A stretch of DNA of 64,000 bases from Azolla caroliniana (Eukaryota > Plantae > Polypodiophyta). The notes under the pieces are model-generated. The model did no database searches. It saw only the letters and a program-made list of their open reading frames with translations, and had not been told where the DNA came from. The stretch covers positions 20,088,001 through 20,152,000 of the forward strand of contig JBHGNT010000014.1 in NCBI GenBank assembly GCA_043228905.1, written 5' to 3'. Shown here in pieces: positions 1,439 through 43,950 of this stretch. The position numbers were made by a program, and so were the translations under genes. The stretch's first letter is position 1. Every line of letters begins with the position of its first letter.

Positions 1439-3765
1439 GGATCTACAATCCACTTACTACATGTATACGCGAGCACTTGAATAGCCATGTTCACTAGTGT
1501 TGGTTCCGCATTGTCTCACAACTTGTGGCATTGGATCCTATTGGGTGTTTCCTTGACTCTTGGAATCAAGGAACCCTCCTCATTGCCTATCCACTTCTCC
1601 ATTGTCGTCCTTGGACTAGTAACTTCCCCACGTAGTAGAGCGTTCATAATTTCAAATCTCATAGTCCATTCGCCCTTGATTCCATGCAGTAGGTTGGTTT
1701 GATCCTGTCATGGCAATGCCATGAGCCGCCTCCGACATTCTATGCTCTTTGATGGACCTTTTGCAATGCTTCCCCACAACAACCCCTTACTTGATCCAAT
1801 TAGTTTATCTAATTCATCTCAGATACATGGGTTTCACAAGATGCATTGATTGAGTTAGGCAAGTTCAAAGTTAGGTTGACCGCATGTGAGCCCTCTTCTT
1901 ATGTCACACCACACCTTCTACATGGATGCACTGAATCTATCCTCCAATTGGCGTGAGAATCTTGGTTTGAGACCCATGTTTAGAATCCATCCCATCTGAG
2001 GGGCCCAATTAGCACATGTACGCGGCTTAAAGTAAGCGATGCGTAGTCTCAATAACGCTTTCCAACAATAATCCCTTGGTTGGAGTCCTTGCATCACAAA
2101 TTTGGCGAGTAATGCTTTGGACTATGAGAGGGAATCAATCAAACCGATCCCTCCTCTCGACTTGGGTGAAGTGAGAACATGCCATGCCACCTTGGTTGAG
2201 GCTGCATAGTTTTTCTTACATGATGATATGTAATTGTGTACCCGTCTCTGCCTCTTATTTATACTTCCTTTGGAGATCGTCAAACATAGTAGGTTGTACC
2301 GTGTTGTTGCAAGAAATACCTGATTCACCACTATGATGTGTCTTGCCAGTGAAAGTTTTTTCGAGCTCGAATGTATCAACTTTTGTTGTATGGAGTGAAT
2401 AACTGGTGCAATCATTGTCTCAGGAGGCGTGTTGAAGCCAATTTGGAAACCCAAATACTTGGTGCTCACTCCCTAGTTTATCCATGTGAAATTGGGATGT
2501 GGGCACCAAGTTGGATGCGGTTCATCATAGAGCCATATTGCACAGGATTTATGCCAATTGATCATGGCGTTTGATCTCTCGCAAAACAAAGATAGTCCAC
2601 TTTCTAGCTTCTTTAGATTCTCCATGTCCCCTTGCATGTAGATTGTGGTATCTTCCACAAATTCTATATCTAGGAGTCATTGGTGAGAGTGTGACACAAG
2701 AACACCACGTAGGTTTACATGCCTCCGGTTGCGGAAGCTAGATAGTGCGTCTGTATATAATAGAAATAGGGATGGAGCATGTGGGCATCCCTGTCGCACA
2801 CCCGTCGCACATAACGTGATATTTGGAGGAAGGGCCCCCTTTCACTTGCTATTGATACACAATTGCTGACATTTTTGTGCAGGGCTACCGTGCCTTTAAT
2901 CCACGACCCTTGGAAGCCAAGTTTCCCCATCATTCTTTCTAGAAAACCCCAACCTACCATGTTGTATGCTTTCTCGAAATCTAGAAGCACCACAACCACC
3001 TTATTGTTGGTACGCTTCGCAAGGGCTATTACTTCCCAGAATGAGAAGAGGTTGTTTAAGATGTTCTGATTTTTAACGAAGCCTATCTAGGAGGAGTGAA
3101 TGAGTTGATTGAAAAGGCGTGTTTGAAGGCATGCCATGATTTTTGCTAGCAAATGGTAGACAATATTGAGAAAAGTTATGGGCTGCTACTTACTTATGTT
3201 GTTGGCATTCCCGCCACCTTTGGGAACATAGTTGTTAAAAAGCGTGTATTCTACGTTTTAGATATTCTGAAGTATTCTACACGTATTCTATTCTATTTAA
3301 CGTATTCTACGTTTTAGAACGGTTGTTTTGCAAATGTTCACGTATTCTAAGAATTTGACGTATTTAACAAGCATTTATCACTTCAAAAAAGTTTAAAATT
3401 TTTTAATTTTTTGAAAAAAAACTTAAAATTTTAAGAAGTATTTAATGTATTTTACAAATATTCTACACGTATTCAAGTATTTAACGTATTTTATCTATAA
3501 AATACGTATTCTAAGTATTTAGAAAAAAAAGTTAGAGCACTTAACATATGTATTTTACATGTATTGTATGTTAAGTATTCTACAACAATGTTTGGGAATG
3601 AGATGTAGCATTCCTTCGGCATATTACCATATGTTTGGAGGAGGTCTTCTTTAATAATATCCCAAAGGCTAGTGAAGAAGTGAGGAGTTAGGCCATTATT
3701 CCAGGGAAATTATCTGCATCTAACTCAAAGAGTGCATCTCATATTTCCATGATTGATAGGGGAGA
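1439..3765 (-). mobile_element. Degenerate L1-type LINE ORF2 (RT region), interrupted by a hAT MITE and abutting the copia LTR
   Basis: Minus-strand fragments LLDFEKAYN, INWHKS, YLGFQIG, KLSLA and KVAW..LTSPKSRGGIG, with many stops and frameshifts. Confidence 0.85.
3227..3590. mobile_element. hAT-type MITE (364 bp)
   Basis: Perfect 8-bp TSD TTTGGGAA (3219-3226 and 3591-3598). Termini CATAGTTGT / ACAACAATG. Interior is full of (C)GTATT(CT) motifs. The LINE sequence resumes across it. Confidence 0.85.
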
Positions 3766-3849
3766 GTGCATCTCATATATGGCAATATCCAATGTTTTGG
3801 GGCGTTGATGGTATTTTATGTTGGTCTCTTATCCTTTGCTAGGAGAAGT

Positions 3850-4760
3850 GGTTAAGCACACTTAAATCAATTTTGCGTAATCTTAATATTCGTTAATTGT
3901 CCCTCGAGTTAGACAATGTGCACTTGAGCATGAAGACTTGCATCTCTAGATATAGGCATGTCTTTTGTCCCTTCAATTGTTGAACATTATTGCAAGTGGT
4001 TCATCAACATGGCCAATTTATTTAGTTTTGACCAATCTTTATCTTTCATACAAATGGCTCTCTTTTGGTCAATCGATCTCCATTGCCAGCTCCTTTGGCT
4101 CAAAACATTGTAGATATAATTCTTCCATGAAGAAAAGTTGGTTTTGTAAAACAACCAACACTCTAACACCACTAATATTGCATCATCTTGGTGTGTTTAC
4201 CTTGTTAGAGTGGAGCAAGTTGAAAATATGTGGAGAGCAAACCTGAATGTGGTTGAATGTAGTGCATTAGATCAAAGTGTAATGCTCTAACTCCCAAACT
4301 TCTTCAAGGAATAATATGCATTGTCGATGAGTCTCTCATATGTGCCCCAACACCCTGTCTTACATTTAAGCAAATGTGAGCTAACTTGTGTGGAAGAAAT
4401 AGTGTAGATGGTGGATAGAGGAATGTGCAACATATGTTCAATTGATACACCTAAAGCACATGTAATGTATCACATTTTCCATTGCAATTGGGATTGCACA
4501 TTGTGGTTGTGAGAGAAATTCGTGCGAGGATTGGGTTGGGTCAAAGATGCATCTAAAGCATCGTTGAATGTAATCAAAGACAAAGCATTGTATTAGTATG
4601 ATACTTAGACTCCCAAACTTGTTTAGGGAAAAAAGTGCATAATGGACTAGTCTCATCACATGTGCCCCAACATCCTATCTCACATCGAAGCAAATGTGAA
4701 GTAAGACATATGGAAGCAATGGTTTGGATAGTGGACAAACGAATGGGCTCTTATAACAAG
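3850..4760 (-). mobile_element. Relic 3' part of an RTE-like LINE with an internal ~320-bp duplication
   Basis: Minus strand reads SSHLLKCKTGCWG and TSHLLRCEIGCWG, resembling the SH.L..E.G.W motif of non-L1 LINE C-termini. Anchors CTCCCAAACTT, ATGTGCCCCAACA and AAGCAAATGTGA each recur about 320 bp apart. Confidence 0.5.
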
Positions 4761-5541
4761 TATAGATGTGTGTGATTACCCCACTCAAGGAAGAATATGG
4801 TTTTGTAGTTAGGTGCGACGTATATAGCATAACGTGTGAAGTGTGAGCGTCCTCATTTTTCCCATGTCATGATACATTGGCGTTGCAAGGCCTTGCTCAT
4901 AGAGGAATCTATTGATGCATTGTGAAGCAATTGTGCTCCATCCAATACAACAAACCATTTATTTCATATCTTGCCTCTAATCGAACACACAACTTTGCTT
5001 TTATATGTCTATTGGATCGTTGAGAGAGAGGTCCTCTCGTTCATCATTTGTTCTCCACGGAAACGAACAAAAATTGCACAAGTTCAAGTTCCCATCGAGC
5101 AAGCACATTGAACATTTTTTTTTGCAATACTATAGTCTATACCAATGTTCTTCTAAAATTGTGTTCTTGTAGAAACAAGCCAACACGCCAATGCAAACAT
5201 ATTTGAGCATACAAGTTTAGCTGATGAAGCAAAATCCTCAATGCGGCATTCGAGATGGGGGGGGGGGGGAGACAAAAACACGGATACATGCAGAGTGAGA
5301 GACATTGGAACGAGTATACAGAGTATTCAGGTGAATCCTCCTCATCTGAAGAGGACGATGAAGTGAATCCTCGGAACAAGCATGCTAGTGCTAGTTCGAC
5401 ACAACTATGTAGTGATTGTGTGCGTGAGTCGGGATCGGACACGAAGCGAATGAATGAAGTGAGTCAAGATCGGATGAAGGCAATGAATGAATGAAAGGCT
5501 TTGCTGGGAAGGCCAAAGAGGCAGAGACAAGAGGCAAGCAC

Positions 5542-6413: not shown

Positions 6414-7463
6414 ATGGAGGTTTCTTCTATGCCAAGCACGGTGGAAGAAGTGTTCGATGATTATAGAGGTCGTCGAGCCGCCCTCATTACGGCTCTTACA
6501 ACTGGTGACTCAATGATCTTAGATCCTTCTCGATTAGATTCTATGCCCCGTTTCCTTTTTTCTTCACGGTTAGGATTTTAGGATTAGGGTGTAGGGATTT
6601 TTTATTTTGCACCTAACTTTTCTTCGATTTCGCTGTTCTCTGCAGATGTGACTGATTTCTACAACCAGTGTGATCCAGGTTTGCTGCCAAAAGCCTATAC
6701 TTTTTCTATCCATTATTTATACAAGAATATATGATACTACTCGCATATATGTATGTATGTATATGTGTACATACACATACATATTACAAAGTATGATTAA
6801 CATGTTCAGCACATAGGTTTATAATGGCTGTTTTCTATGATGCATTTGCATGTGCATTTGCCGAACACGGAGAAGCATACAGAGGGAGGTTAAGATAAGC
6901 TATGTACATTGGTTGTAAGTAATGAGTCACATTTCAAATCAATATTTTCCTCCAATGTATCAATCATGAATTGCATTAATACAAGTTATGTACAGTTATT
7001 GAAGGTAATGTTGCTGTAAGTGAACATAATAAAAGGATATACATCTATTTACCTGGGAAGAAATGGTATAAATGAATTAAGAAAGCATTTCATTGAAGGC
7101 ACTGTTACCTAAATTTCATATGAAAAACTAGTAAAAAAGGATCAAGTCAAATGCACAATATTGATCTAGAGAGAGAATTTGTAAATTGTATGCATGTTTC
7201 TGGAGACAATGCTGGTAGATTTCAATACAAGATGAAGCTATGCATAGATAAAGTTATGTAAATGAGCCTGAATGCTTTTCATTGAATGCAAAGTTGCTGT
7301 AAGGAATGTGAGAAAAGAAATAAGGAAGAGGGATCAAGAGAGATAGACAGGATTGATGGAAAAAGAAATGTAGTATTCATAGTGTCTACAGCAGGGCACC
7401 AATACATATAAGACCAGAGGTAAAACCATCATTTGATACATTATTTAGCTAAAAATTCACAGA

Positions 7464-23269: not shown

Positions 23270-24095
23270 AAAAAGAAAAAGTGATATTCAACCTCTACTA
23301 GATTTTCATTGTATACCTTACATGTCATCATACTTTATGTATTTTGGTGCCATGATGCAACTTTAGTACCTAGCTTGTGTGAGCGTGTGTGAAGGTTTTG
23401 CTAGAGTTAAGATTCATGTTGGTTATATGGTATGGTTGAACACGATCAAACTATAGGGATCCTTACATTATATTGGATCCAACTTTCACAAGGGGTTGTT
23501 AACTTGTTTGTAGTGTAATATTCCAATTTGGACATTATACCATCTTGTCATTTCATCCTTGAACTTACCATTAGTCTTTCCTTAATAACCACATATTATA
23601 TAACATCACCTAAAACCTCTAAGAGGTCTTCCACATTTCACCTTTATGTCAACCATCCAACTACATGAGAGAGTTTTGCTTTAATCATTCTTTTGTAGTT
23701 TGCCCCCAAAATTTCAAATTGTATTTGCTAATTGATGGTTTTCATTTTTGTGATGTACTAGTATACTCTTTGTAATGCCATCATCTCTTTCGAACCAATG
23801 ATTGTGACCAATAGCATAACCTAGTGTATGTAGCAATGGATTTAACTCCTAATTGTCTCCTCAAAAACCTAGTTTGAATCTTCTCAGTCTCATTCCATGA
23901 ATTTAGTGAGATAGTATCATCCCCCAGTTCTACTTCATAGAGCCAGACTTGGGTTACCATGACATTAAATAACATTAGCATCACTTCCCATCCATGATTG
24001 TCACTTTATTGACCTTCCAACATTTAATAAAATTTCCAACTACCTTGAAGCCTAGATTCAAGACATTCAATACATCAATACCAAGATATTTTAAG
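23270..24095 (-). mobile_element. RTE-like LINE relic (post-RT C-terminal region)
   Basis: KYLGID, VWLYEVEL...WNETEKIQTRFLRRQLGVKS and HTRSHKLGTKVASW. Homologous to 42050-43950. Confidence 0.65.
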
Positions 24096-24695
24096 CTTTG
24101 TACGGATTATATGGATTCTCTCTAGGGCAGTGTTGGGCAAAGTTTTTAACTCCTACCGGAAATTTTCCTGTTGCTTGTGATCCTAACCGGAAATTAAAAT
24201 TTTTAACCGGCCACTTTCCTACAAGTGAACATGTTAAATTATTTTTTTACCACATACCAAATTTTTTTAGCACATGTATGATGCAACAACCATATGGGCT
24301 TTAAGATGCCCCATGTACACATGCACATAGAGAGTCCACTAATCATTATGTTGTCCTAAATATACATATAGCAAACTATCCACCCCACATGAGATCATTT
24401 GAGTTCAATTGACAAAACCCTCCCCCTTTGATGATAGAAGCATTGTTACATCAGTCAAAAACAATGACTAGCACCACTAAACCCGTATAGGTGAGTATAC
24501 CTTTAAGTGAAAAGGATAATCTCTAAGATATGAGTAATGACATACAAGTCCAAGCATCCAAAACTTAGTCGTATGTCCATATTAGCATGTTACTATCACA
24601 ACTCCACAAACAAGGGTCATGTAACCTGAATTTCAGCAAATAAATTACCAGTTGTCTTGTATGTGATATCAGATTGGCAATGATAGGAATATTAC

Positions 24696-25241
24696 CTCTC
24701 TTAACATGGAAAAGTTTATTTCATGGTTTGCAAGAGCCAACATTATAAGATCAACATCCTGCTCAATTTCTAGAGTGTCAAAGATGCTATACTAGAAACA
24801 GTTGATAACAATCAAAACCATTTTTATTTCATGTACAGTAGAAAATACATAGAAGTCCATACAAACAATGGAAAGTATTGGAATCAAAGCCACGAAGATT
24901 TATCTCCAAGCAAATGTATGACATGACTTTATGCCCCCCTTCACCTAGGGAGTTTGCATCAACAAAATAACCTAAGATGTAGAAATACTACAGGGTGGGA
25001 ACAACATGTGATGGTCATGCTATTTAGCCAGTAGACTCTAGGTTCCTACTTTGATCTGACGCCATCCAGGATCATGATTGAGTCAAAGGTGTATATAGTA
25101 TCAAAGAGTAACTGCCAACCTGTCCATGAAAGGAGTCCCTGGTGTGATTACATTTGAATCACAAGCTTCAGACTTCTCCTTGGGAGGAATAATTCGACCT
25201 TCCGCCTCAAATTCCCTGCCCAATCTTTCTTCTTTGGTAGC
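24696..25241 (-). pseudogene. XRN: Captured fragment of an XRN-family 5'-3' exoribonuclease (three consecutive exons with introns)
   Basis: 25241-25050: [62 protein letters not shown]. 24971-24853: [19 protein letters not shown]...[13 protein letters not shown] (frameshift). 24758-24696: DVDLIMLALANHEINFSMLRE. AG/GT borders are mostly intact. Confidence 0.9.
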
Positions 25242-25577
25242 CTTGATCAAACATGGTAGATTATAATTAATCAGAACACAGTAAAAATTCTATCAATCCC
25301 TATTTTCAAACAACATGCACAGGCAAGATAGTCCTGTATTTTAAAAAATCACCTTCATTTAGTCTATAATACAGCTTGATTCTCATAAAACAAATATAAT
25401 TGTATTGCATTGACATAGACCCATCATTGTAAGTGTGCATATATCCCCTCCACGAATTGATTAGTGAGATTCATGACATGGAATGAATTGAACTTAAGAG
25501 CCAATATCTCTACATATACACCATATCAAGTGAAACTAACAAAAGAAAGCTAGATAGGGGAATGATATGATACTCAC

Positions 25578-25840
25578 TCTAGTCAAACTCAAGAGCCAAG
25601 TAGTTGATGTAGACCTCGTTGATGATACAAAAAGAAACAACAACTCTAATTTTGCTCTCGTTCAAATCAATAGATAAAAAATCATTAAGTTCAATTTATC
25701 TTCCCCAAAAGAACTTGTTTTTTAAATTAATGCATATTCTTTAACTGATGATTTTGAACATGCAAAATTAAACTTTCACTTTCTAGGCATTACCTTTTAT
25801 GAACATCCACATATTCATCTGTCTCATCATCAATCTCTTC
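25578..25840 (-). pseudogene. Captured fragment of a DUF21/CBS (CNNM/MGR-type) gene
   Basis: Exon 25840-25794 (cag|EEIDDETDEYVDVHK|gtaatg) is followed by a degenerate exon at about 25651-25578 beginning IRVVV. Together they match the plant DUF21 motif QEEIVDETDEYVDVHKRIRVAAA. Confidence 0.78.
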
Positions 25841-26495
25841 CTGCATTATTATTAACCCACAAAGGTGTATGAGATTAAAGAAACAAAGCAGCCCATAGTC
25901 GAGAATCGAGATGTATGTGCAAACTACTTGGAGTTTAATAAACTAATGAATTAGCCCCATTAAGGCAACCACGAAAACATACATCTAATGGTTTGACGAG
26001 TCGAGGGTTCCTTCTGCATTTGCGTGGATCGGAAGGCTATCAAACATATGATAATCTCCACAACATGAGTACAAACAGATGACCTTGCGTCCCACATCAT
26101 TGTTATGCAATTGACACAGAGACAACAGATTAGAGCAATCCCCATATTAACTGCACAAAAGATCAAAATGAATAAATAGAGTTGATGATAAACAACTTAA
26201 GCACAAAAAACCCAACCAAACGACTTAAGCACAAACCTTGAAAACAAAACACACTATTCGCGAAGAGGCAATACAAAACATAGGAAAAGAGAGGGGAAAC
26301 AGGGGGAAACAGGGATTCGAGAGTTTGGAAACAGGGGGGGAAACATGGAAAAGAGGGGGGGAAAGAGGGATTGGATAGTGTAGGGAAACAGGGAAAAACA
26401 AACAAAATGTGCGGGAAACAGAAAGAAAGACAGATAGAAAGTGGGAGGGGGAAATACGAGAGAGAGGGAGAGAGTGATAGACACTGTGTATGTGT

Positions 26496-26540
<45 letters not shown>

Positions 26541-26595
26541 ACTTTTTTTTTATACGAGAGAGAGGGAGAGAGTGACAGACACTCTGTGTGTGTAG

Positions 26596-26630
<35 letters not shown>

Positions 26631-26829
26631 TTACTTTTTTATTACTTTTTTTTGTAATGCATAAATAGCCGGTTCATAAAATATGAACTGGCTAGATTCC
26701 GGTTTTGGGGAAATTCTAGCCGGAATCAATTCCGGCTCTTCCCCACCTTGGCCGGCAAAAGTCCTCACCCAACCGGAACGCTAACACTGTTCTTGGGACT
26801 TTGCCCAACACTGCTCTAGGGTATTGGTG

Positions 26830-42049: not shown

Positions 42050-43950
42050 ATTGCTAGATGCAATTTTGGTGACAAGTGAGCTCTTGAAATCGACAAGAGC
42101 CAAACATGGCAATGGATAACAACGATTGTGTATGAAGCTTTCAACCAAGGTTAATCCGAAGAATTGCTCATGAGTTGGATTGAACCAATCCATAAAGGAG
42201 GAGATTTCAATATCTATGGAACTATCATGGTGTTAGCATTGTCTATAATGGAACAAAAGGTCGTCTCATGACTTCATGACATGAACGTCATCATAACAAA
42301 TAAACTCTTGGTCAAGTAGGCATTAGATCACAACATTCCATTTCTGTCATTTCTTTACAAGTGGGAACCCCATGTTATTGTTTTATGGACTTTGACAAAA
42401 GCCTTTAACACCATACAAAGACGTGACCTGGAAAAGAACAATATAAATTACAATGCTATTAAAGGATAGAGGAAATGCAAGAGAATTATATGAGCAAATT
42501 TGATGCCGATTGAAAATGGATAATGGTTTCTCGAAGTACCTTTTTTGAAACATGAGGGTCAATCAAGGGTGTCAATCAAGTCTATGCACATTGTGTAGAA
42601 GAAATAGTATGAAAGGCTACAAAAAGAAAGACAAATTAGATGGCCCAAAACATATGGAAGAGCTTATTATTGTACCCCTATATCTCAATGACGTGGTGTT
42701 ATTCTTGGACACTACCAAGGGAATACAACCAAGACACTACGCGACTTTTACATACAAGGGAGAGCCAACACAAGTGGTGCAAAGCTTCAAATATCTTGGT
42801 ATTAATGTCCCATCGACAAATAGGTGGAGCACATGCTATAAATATGAACTTCAAGTAAGTTGGAATAGTTATTATATGTTTGAGAATCAATGCAACCAAA
42901 GTAATACATGAGGGTGAGAAGCTATTAAATGCTATGGTGATCAAAGCATTTGTTTATAGATTGGCACATATCATCACTTAGTGCATGGAATGAAATAGAG
43001 AAAATTCAAAAATTGTTTTTACAAGAGACAATGGGGTGTTAATTTCTCAACATCTATCTTATCATGCTATTAGACGCATGTGCTCTACTTGTATAGGTGA
43101 TAACAACGCAAATAGTATACAAATATGTCATAAAAGTGAATAATATGCATGCACATGATCATGGACTGTCAAAATAAACCTGAAAGCTTGGCTGCATGGT
43201 ACAAAAAAACTAGTAAGAGAAATCCTCAACGTCCTGTCTTGTCATGATAATAGAAACATGGGCTTGGCCCATAGGGGTTCTAACAATGCAAATGGTATAT
43301 GAATATATCACAAAAATATAAAAAAATGATTGATCTTGGGTTTCCATAACAAACTCGGAAGATAGGCTTCAAGATACAAAAAAACTAGTTTGAGAAAAAT
43401 CCTTTCATCCAACTTGGTGCTTTGCATTATGACATGGTTTAGAAGATGGAGAGTAGAAGAATTAGGTAATGTATGAAGTATGATCATCAAAGGTAGAGTT
43501 ATTTCGGATGAAGTGCACAAATGAGAAAATGTCAAAATTGGAATACTGCATTTTAAATGTTAACCCTCAATGTTGACCCCAATACAAAGTAAAAATGGTA
43601 GAACATATCCAATTGCATCTCACTACCCACACCCTAGCACTTCCTTGAACTCGCTTACACACGTTACACGTTGAGGTAGCACCATGTAATCATCACCTAC
43701 TATGAAGACATGTAAGGTAGGCAATAATAACCTAGTGGATGATGAATACTAAATATGTTAGAACATATCAAACCACATATCATTACCCACATGAGCGTTG
43801 GCTCAGGCTCTCATAGAACCTTCGCACTTCCTCGAACTGGCTCACACACGTTAGGATTTGAGGTAGCATCATGGAATCATCACCGAATATGAAGACATGG
43901 ATGATGAATATCACTTACTCTTGCATGCTCAAAATATAATGTAATTAACG
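42050..43950 (+). mobile_element. Degenerate RTE-like LINE
   Basis: WIEPIHKGG, CFMDF.KAF, V.QGC, QSFKYLGI, WNEIEKIQKLF and a duplicated RTGSHTL..EVASW C-terminal motif. Confidence 0.65.

Follow-up and report, generated by a model that had tools for sequence, protein, structure and literature searches.

The locus analysed here raises the question of how exons of an XRN exoribonuclease gene came to lie between perfect inverted repeats in the DNA of a fern, and what has become of them. The stretch under study, referred to below as the window, comprises 64,000 nucleotides of Azolla caroliniana (contig JBHGNT010000014.1, positions 20,088,001 to 20,152,000), and positions are those of the window unless a contig is named. 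A first-pass annotation of the sequence had read the segment from 24128 to 26813 as a Pack-hAT element, a hAT transposon carrying host gene DNA but no transposase, and had proposed that it transposed after capturing its cargo. We find it very probable that this segment is a non-autonomous Pack-hAT transposon whose XRN cargo moved repeatedly as a unit while decaying.

The element measures 2,686 bp between its target site duplications (TSDs), and its two ends are built around terminal inverted repeats (TIRs) as follows.

24120-24127, unstranded: left TSD copy, CTCTAGGG, 8 bp, identical to 26814-26821
24128-24143, plus strand: left TIR, CAGTGTTGGGCAAAGT, 16 bp; also found at the element ends in about 35 family contigs
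24128-24261, plus strand: left subterminal region with three CCGG, 76-93% identical to left-type ends of L021, L039, L065 and others
26661-26813, minus strand: right subterminal region with six CCGG, 81-93% identical to right-type ends of L007, L123, L009, L065 and others
26798-26813, minus strand: right TIR, 16 bp, reverse complement of the left TIR
26814-26821, unstranded: right TSD copy, CTCTAGGG, identical to the left copy

Both TIRs and both TSD copies, which lie directly outside them, are perfect, and the TIR 16-mer has only these two matches in the 64-kb window even when up to three mismatches are allowed. Under a uniform model, about 1e-6 such arrangements of TIRs and TSDs are expected by chance per window. 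Nine copies of the tetranucleotide CCGG lie in the 277 terminal nucleotides, compared with none in the 2,409-nucleotide interior (Poisson p = 4e-10, taking the window mean of 1.39 per kb as baseline), and this clustering would fit the pattern expected of subterminal transposase-binding repeats. No match to a transposase was obtained inside the element, either by tblastn with the transposase of the family's own member L065 (see below) or by Pfam search; a weak Transpos_assoc match at 25963-26196 (E = 0.008) was below the cut-off and was rejected. The surroundings of the element include retrotransposon open reading frames (ORFs), and its left flank (23842-24103) is a diverged copy, 76-91% identical in patches, of a repeat at 42777-43042 on the minus strand.

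Relatives were collected by an exact-match scan of a metagenome collection with the TIR 16-mer. The scan returned chance matches, among them the human-gut metagenome contig L030, an unrelated animal-type family, and about 35 contigs of European Nucleotide Archive (ENA) assemblies ERZ10343xx-10344xx in which the sequence inward of the 16-mer is homologous to the left or the right end of the window element, both types of end being represented. Complete elements with perfect 8-bp TSDs were found in L021 (418-3005, TSD GTGTTCTC) and in L065 (3094-8057, 4,964 bp, TSD GGCATGAC). L065 shares identical TIRs and homologous subterminal regions with the window element, and its 631-amino-acid ORF (3455-5347, minus strand) scores 34.1 bits against DUF4371 and 26.6 bits against Dimer_Tnp_hAT, for which the curated Pfam cut-offs are 32.1 and 21.4 bits. 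The C-terminus of this ORF matches the Hermes hAT transposase (E = 4e-4), and a zinc-finger ORF precedes it. Because L065, with the same ends and an 8-bp TSD, encodes a hAT transposase, sequence comparison assigns the family to hAT, with L065 as an autonomous-type partner. The non-autonomous members have in common with L065 only about 130-260 bp at each end. Each of the three TSDs fits one of the two positions of the target preference nTnnnnAn, which we take to be the consensus, although these are only three sites.

Other contents of these contigs were also recorded. L021 is a 2.6-kb non-autonomous member with an interior unrelated to that of the window element; a weak BTB/POZ match in it (1992-2267, minus strand, E = 0.036) and other weak matches in L021 and L094 fell below cut-offs and were set aside. 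L065 contains, between its transposase gene and its right end, a 103-amino-acid ORF (7115-7423, plus strand) with a weak match to a ZZ zinc finger (E = 0.003, below cut-off), which may be a further captured fragment. The unrelated multi-copy family found in the scan ends with exactly the same 16-mer CAGTGTTGGGCAAAGT, followed by AAGTAC/TACTTAAG-type subterminal repeats that are reminiscent of Tol2-like animal hATs; L010, L012, L022, L023, L025, L028, L032, L035 and others belong to it (JGI Ga0056108, Ga0056133-135, Ga0209259, Ga0209780). Identical 16-bp termini in otherwise unrelated families are curious.

The 2.4-kb interior of the window element is foreign DNA that includes a genomic fragment, exons together with introns, of an XRN/Rat1-type 5'-3' exoribonuclease gene. 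Its parts are the following.

24457-26421, minus strand: interior cargo block, common to the other XRN-carrying copies (L007, L126, L014) and without a match to the interior of L065
25050-25241, minus strand: XRN pseudo-exon 1, 192 nt, two in-frame TGA; Pfam XRN_N 123-160, PDB 5fir and others, junctions as in real genes
24972-25049, minus strand: retained intron 1, 78 nt, GT...AG; same position in L001, L002, L003, L004, L124 and L125
24853-24971, minus strand: XRN pseudo-exon 2, 119 nt, 1-bp deletion; Pfam XRN_N 182-219, PDB; 120 nt in real genes and in L126
24759-24852, minus strand: retained intron 2, 94 nt, donor CT; donor GT in L007, L126 and L014
24696-24758, minus strand: XRN pseudo-exon 3, 63 nt, DVDLIML motif, AG before and GT donor after; Pfam XRN_N 219-240 (E = 3e-4), tblastn with real XRN loci

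Three stop-free minus-strand pieces match consecutive, collinear parts of Pfam XRN_N, namely positions 123-160 (piece 25104-25289, E = 1.5e-5), 182-219 (piece 24832-24987, E = 4.5e-6) and 219-240 (piece 24672-24791, E = 3e-4); the first two pieces also match solved Rat1, XRN2 and XRN1 chains in the PDB. Exons were searched singly, and were concatenated only in local scripts for difference counts and frame checks. For comparison we used six real XRN loci from plant DNA in public assemblies (L001, L002, L003, L004, L124 and L125). The pseudo-exons, with AG...GT limits and lengths of 192, 119 and 63 nt, have the same junctions as real plant XRN genes, in which the lengths are 192, 120 and 63 nt (L001, L002, L004 and L124 for all three exons, L003 for the first two). 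Two introns kept at conserved positions agree with the proposal of the first-pass annotation that capture occurred at the DNA level.

The fragment lacks the attributes of a functional XRN gene, since only XRN_N positions 123-240 are present and these are damaged. Pseudo-exon 1 carries TGA stops at 25103-25101 (stop 1) and 25085-25083 (stop 2), pseudo-exon 2 has lost 1 bp near 24961/24960, at 24852-24851 the donor of intron 2 has become CT in place of GT, and a change at 24936-24934 turns the catalytic GEGEHK motif into GEGGHK. Amino-acid singletons number 21 in the 125 codons of the fragment, against 1-8 in the three real genes compared, and singleton changes at codon positions 1 and 2 number 24, against 5-16 in three real genes. 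When all forward frames of L001 and of L002, a contig spanning a complete XRN gene with both XRN_N and XRN_M exons, were compared with the entire window by tblastn, XRN similarity was confined to 24678-25250, and the sole other match was the zinc knuckle of a copia gag. Neither further XRN exons in the element nor XRN homology across the TIRs, which the first-pass annotation had named as the observation that would speak against it, was found in this search. The structural part of that annotation was borne out: the window search and tblastn agree with perfect 16-bp TIRs and an 8-bp TSD enclosing no transposase, Pfam, PDB and the junctions of real genes identify three consecutive XRN nuclease-domain exons with introns at 24696-25241 (minus strand), the two stops, the frameshift and the single GT to CT donor change are all present, and the domains and Hermes match of L065 fit a Pack-type hAT. 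The window copy is probably a dead passenger without coding function, its most likely effect on the host being none.

Evidence that the cargo has moved together with the ends comes from three other XRN-carrying copies. L007 matches window 24457-26421 (1,965 nt) at 92.9% identity and includes the right end; L126, reached through P0012, is 90.1% identical over window 26257-24622; L014 is 83% identical over 24492-26165 by BLAST and 88% in multiple alignment. Because homology to L007 runs up to the final base of the TIR and no further, the 574-nt flank beyond being unrelated to the window, the alignment identifies the window and L007 copies as independent insertions of one cargo-bearing unit. Homology to the window is lost on the other side at 24457 in L007, at about 24467 in L014 and at 24622 in L126, and because these points differ, the copies are not alike in the left third of the element. 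In L007 (1-120), near the truncated end, about 55 nt from the part equivalent to window 24457-24490 or thereabouts are duplicated in direct orientation. In L014 (1716-1946), the right-type end of a second family member starts at 1737, inside the cargo block (about window 24467); nested or abutting insertions such as this one have been proposed as a way in which Pack elements gain new cargo.

The lesions in the cargo are distributed among the four copies in a nested manner. In the four-way alignment, L126 has all three exons open (192, 120 and 63 nt), with CGA at both stop sites and an intact Ser codon TCG. The 1-bp deletion and stop 2 are common to the window, L007 and L014, stop 1 is common to the window and L007, and only the window has the donor GT>CT and E>G changes. 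In less decayed copies each stop site is CGA, and both stops arose by CGA>TGA. Private damage is also present in L007 (a 1-bp deletion), L014 (a 7-bp insertion and a 44-bp deletion) and L126 (loss of the exon 3 acceptor). Quartet-informative sites divide 18:6:4 in favour of grouping the window with L007 and L126 with L014; the copies differ among themselves by 7-12%, and divergence private to the window is about 2.9%. Because the lesions are nested across the four copies, they suggest an order of events in which capture of near-intact exons would have been followed by a first amplification, then by the frameshift and stop 2, and then by stop 1, after which the window and L007 copies would have split and the window-private changes would have accumulated. 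A reading of the translations reveals about 10 replacements, common to all copies, at otherwise invariant positions, indicating either a period of relaxed constraint ahead of amplification or a divergent parental paralogue.

These comparisons indicate that the element transposed repeatedly as a unit, its cargo decaying neutrally meanwhile. They agree with the suggestion of the first-pass annotation that the element transposed after capture and may be a multi-copy family, for L007, L126 and L014 carry the cargo, the flank is unrelated and the lesions are nested. The contrast between pristine ends and decayed cargo, from which that suggestion had been drawn, is weak evidence by itself, because 48 unmutated end bases have a chance of about 1 in 4 at 2.9% divergence. 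The case for post-capture mobility rests on the nested lesions.

As to mechanism, the element retains only about 130-150 bp of each family end, comprising the 16-bp TIR and subterminal CCGG-containing motifs, and the transposase of autonomous relatives, L065 for example, would recognise these ends in trans. The XRN fragment would have been acquired at the DNA level, likely through faulty gap repair or a template switch following excision, or by remobilisation of nested insertions. Because the parental gene was not found, the boundaries and the mechanism of capture are ones that we infer.

Several observations weigh against a Pack-hAT that moved repeatedly with its cargo. The parental XRN gene was not found, and the real XRN loci used for comparison are only 67-74% identical to the cargo. 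Among contigs with both ends present, L015 and L094 are without matching TSDs. No empty-site allele was found, the repeat at 42777-43055 being too diverged for reconstruction. Only L007 shows a flank, so that two distinct insertion sites (window and L007) are documented, and L007, L126 and L014 come from assemblies other than that of the window's genome. Repeats common to the window and the ERZ assemblies are about 87% identical. Further comparisons concern the origin of the cargo and the ends. A word search with the first XRN exon piece gave only exon-sized XRN fragments of at most 85% identity, with neither a near-identical copy nor a parent among them, and one with the translated left end gave no match. 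The low identity to real XRN loci holds for the least-decayed copy too, and third positions are saturated. At the protein level the nearest relative of the cargo is an L003-type gene (P0007, 85% identity), and the longest exact word in common with real XRN loci is 20 nt for L001 and at most 14 nt for the five others. By these comparisons, either the source paralogue is unsampled or the capture would be old.

Two further features lie in the interior.

25794-25840, minus strand: exon-like open stretch of 47 nt, AG/GT-flanked, identity not established
26250-26634, unstranded: G-rich short repeats and (GA)n tracts of low complexity, of which about 10 nt are left in L007

The first presumably resembles the C-terminal region of plant DUF21 proteins, a lead that is unconfirmed; Pfam, PDB and an exhaustive HMMER search gave no significant support for a DUF21/CBS identity, the stretch being only about 16 codons long. 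With a 50-amino-acid piece over it, the exhaustive HMMER search gave one match, P0012, which is another copy of the element. In the window copy, the second feature includes a tandem duplication of about 98 bp (26454-26630, 89% identity) that includes (GA)n tracts.

Other explanations of the element were considered. Plant XRN is an endogenous suppressor of RNA silencing, and the element might accordingly be a regulatory one, its cargo giving rise to transcripts or small interfering RNAs (siRNAs) that act in trans on the parental XRN gene and couple the family to the silencing machinery; we consider this very unlikely. The cargo is genuine XRN sequence present in several copies, and host coding sequence is known to be transported and shuffled by Pack-type elements (PMC8903248). 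No parental gene was found, however, and the low identity and short exact words shared with real XRN loci would somewhat disfavour the siRNA idea; the differences among copies also mean that the cargo is old. The CGA>TGA change seen at both stops is that expected from deamination of methylated CpG, consistent with the family having once been methylated; in a CpG decay test on the window-private substitutions, too few CpG sites were left to show a signal. Lower XRN would strengthen silencing, presumably with no obvious gain for the element. It is likewise very improbable that the XRN-carrying hAT subfamily serves as a small-RNA source acting on fern XRN, such that transposon copy number feeds back on silencing strength. 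A link to RNA silencing would be interesting if true and is so far without support.

We think it very unlikely that some copy contributes XRN-derived exons to a chimeric host transcript or to one driven by the transposon. Most splice sites are intact, L126 has all three exons open, and the cargo has the same orientation relative to the ends as the transposase gene of L065, but in the window copy the exons hold two stops and a frameshift, one donor has been lost and the catalytic motif is broken, and this copy sits among retrotransposon ORFs. Membership of another superfamily that makes 8-bp duplications, for example a P-like one, is highly improbable. An 8-bp TSD by itself is not proof of hAT, being not exclusive to that superfamily, but L065, whose TIRs are identical and whose subterminal regions are homologous, codes for a protein that contains DUF4371 and the hAT dimerisation domain and matches Hermes, and the terminus CAGTG fits what we take to be the usual hAT terminal motif. 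Finally, that an XRN pseudogene fragment lies between unrelated inverted repeats, or between two independent insertions of miniature inverted-repeat transposable elements, and was never mobilised as a unit is scarcely credible, for although the window alone offers a single copy and no empty site, the chance expectation is about 1e-6, L007 joins the same cargo to the right end with the flank changing right at the TIR, and the ends and TSDs of the family occur repeatedly.

With the element read as a decayed Pack-hAT, its place among described transposons can be considered. Descriptions and catalogues of Pack-hAT and other Pack-TYPE elements exist for maize and rice (Gisby and Catoni, 2022; PMC8903248). 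Pack-hATs are therefore already known, and what is new here is the family, the fern host and the XRN cargo; mechanistically the case is ordinary. It is mainly from seed plants that Pack-type capture has been catalogued (PMC8903248), and the family accordingly adds taxonomic breadth, and a literature search on gene capture by fern hATs found no paper on that subject. The finding of an autonomous-type partner, together with nested lesions in four copies, allows capture, amplification and continuing decay to be placed in order. For annotators, the locus is a concrete case in which XRN-like pseudo-exons ought not to be annotated as genes.

Compared with known systems, the element is closest in kind to the Pack-hATs of maize and rice. 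It shares with them a non-autonomous TIR structure, an 8-bp TSD, hAT-type ends, host gene fragments inside and a multi-copy family, and it has the properties of Pack-TYPE elements in that no transposase but a host gene fragment lies within, and the cargo has been mobilised with the ends, as seen from copies in other assemblies. It differs from them in its fern host, its 16-bp TIR (CAGTGTTGGGCAAAGT) family, its DUF4371-type transposase partner and its XRN exoribonuclease cargo, and no sign of exonisation was seen. Pack-MULEs likewise capture gene fragments with introns, amplify after capture and carry cargo that decays as a pseudogene, but they belong to the Mutator superfamily and have long TIRs and a TSD of about 9 bp, whereas the present element has 16-bp TIRs, an 8-bp TSD and a hAT transposase as its partner. 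The Ac/Ds pairs of hAT elements resemble the present family in their 8-bp TSD and in having derivatives with short TIRs and subterminal repeats that are mobilised in trans, as would be the case here; classical Ds elements, in contrast, are mostly internal deletions of Ac, while only about 130-260 bp per end are common to the present elements and L065. With respect to plant XRN2/3/4 (Rat1-type) genes, the cargo matches XRN_N 123-240 and conserves their exon structure, but it consists of only three internal exons and, with its stops, frameshift and broken GEGEHK motif, is not a gene.

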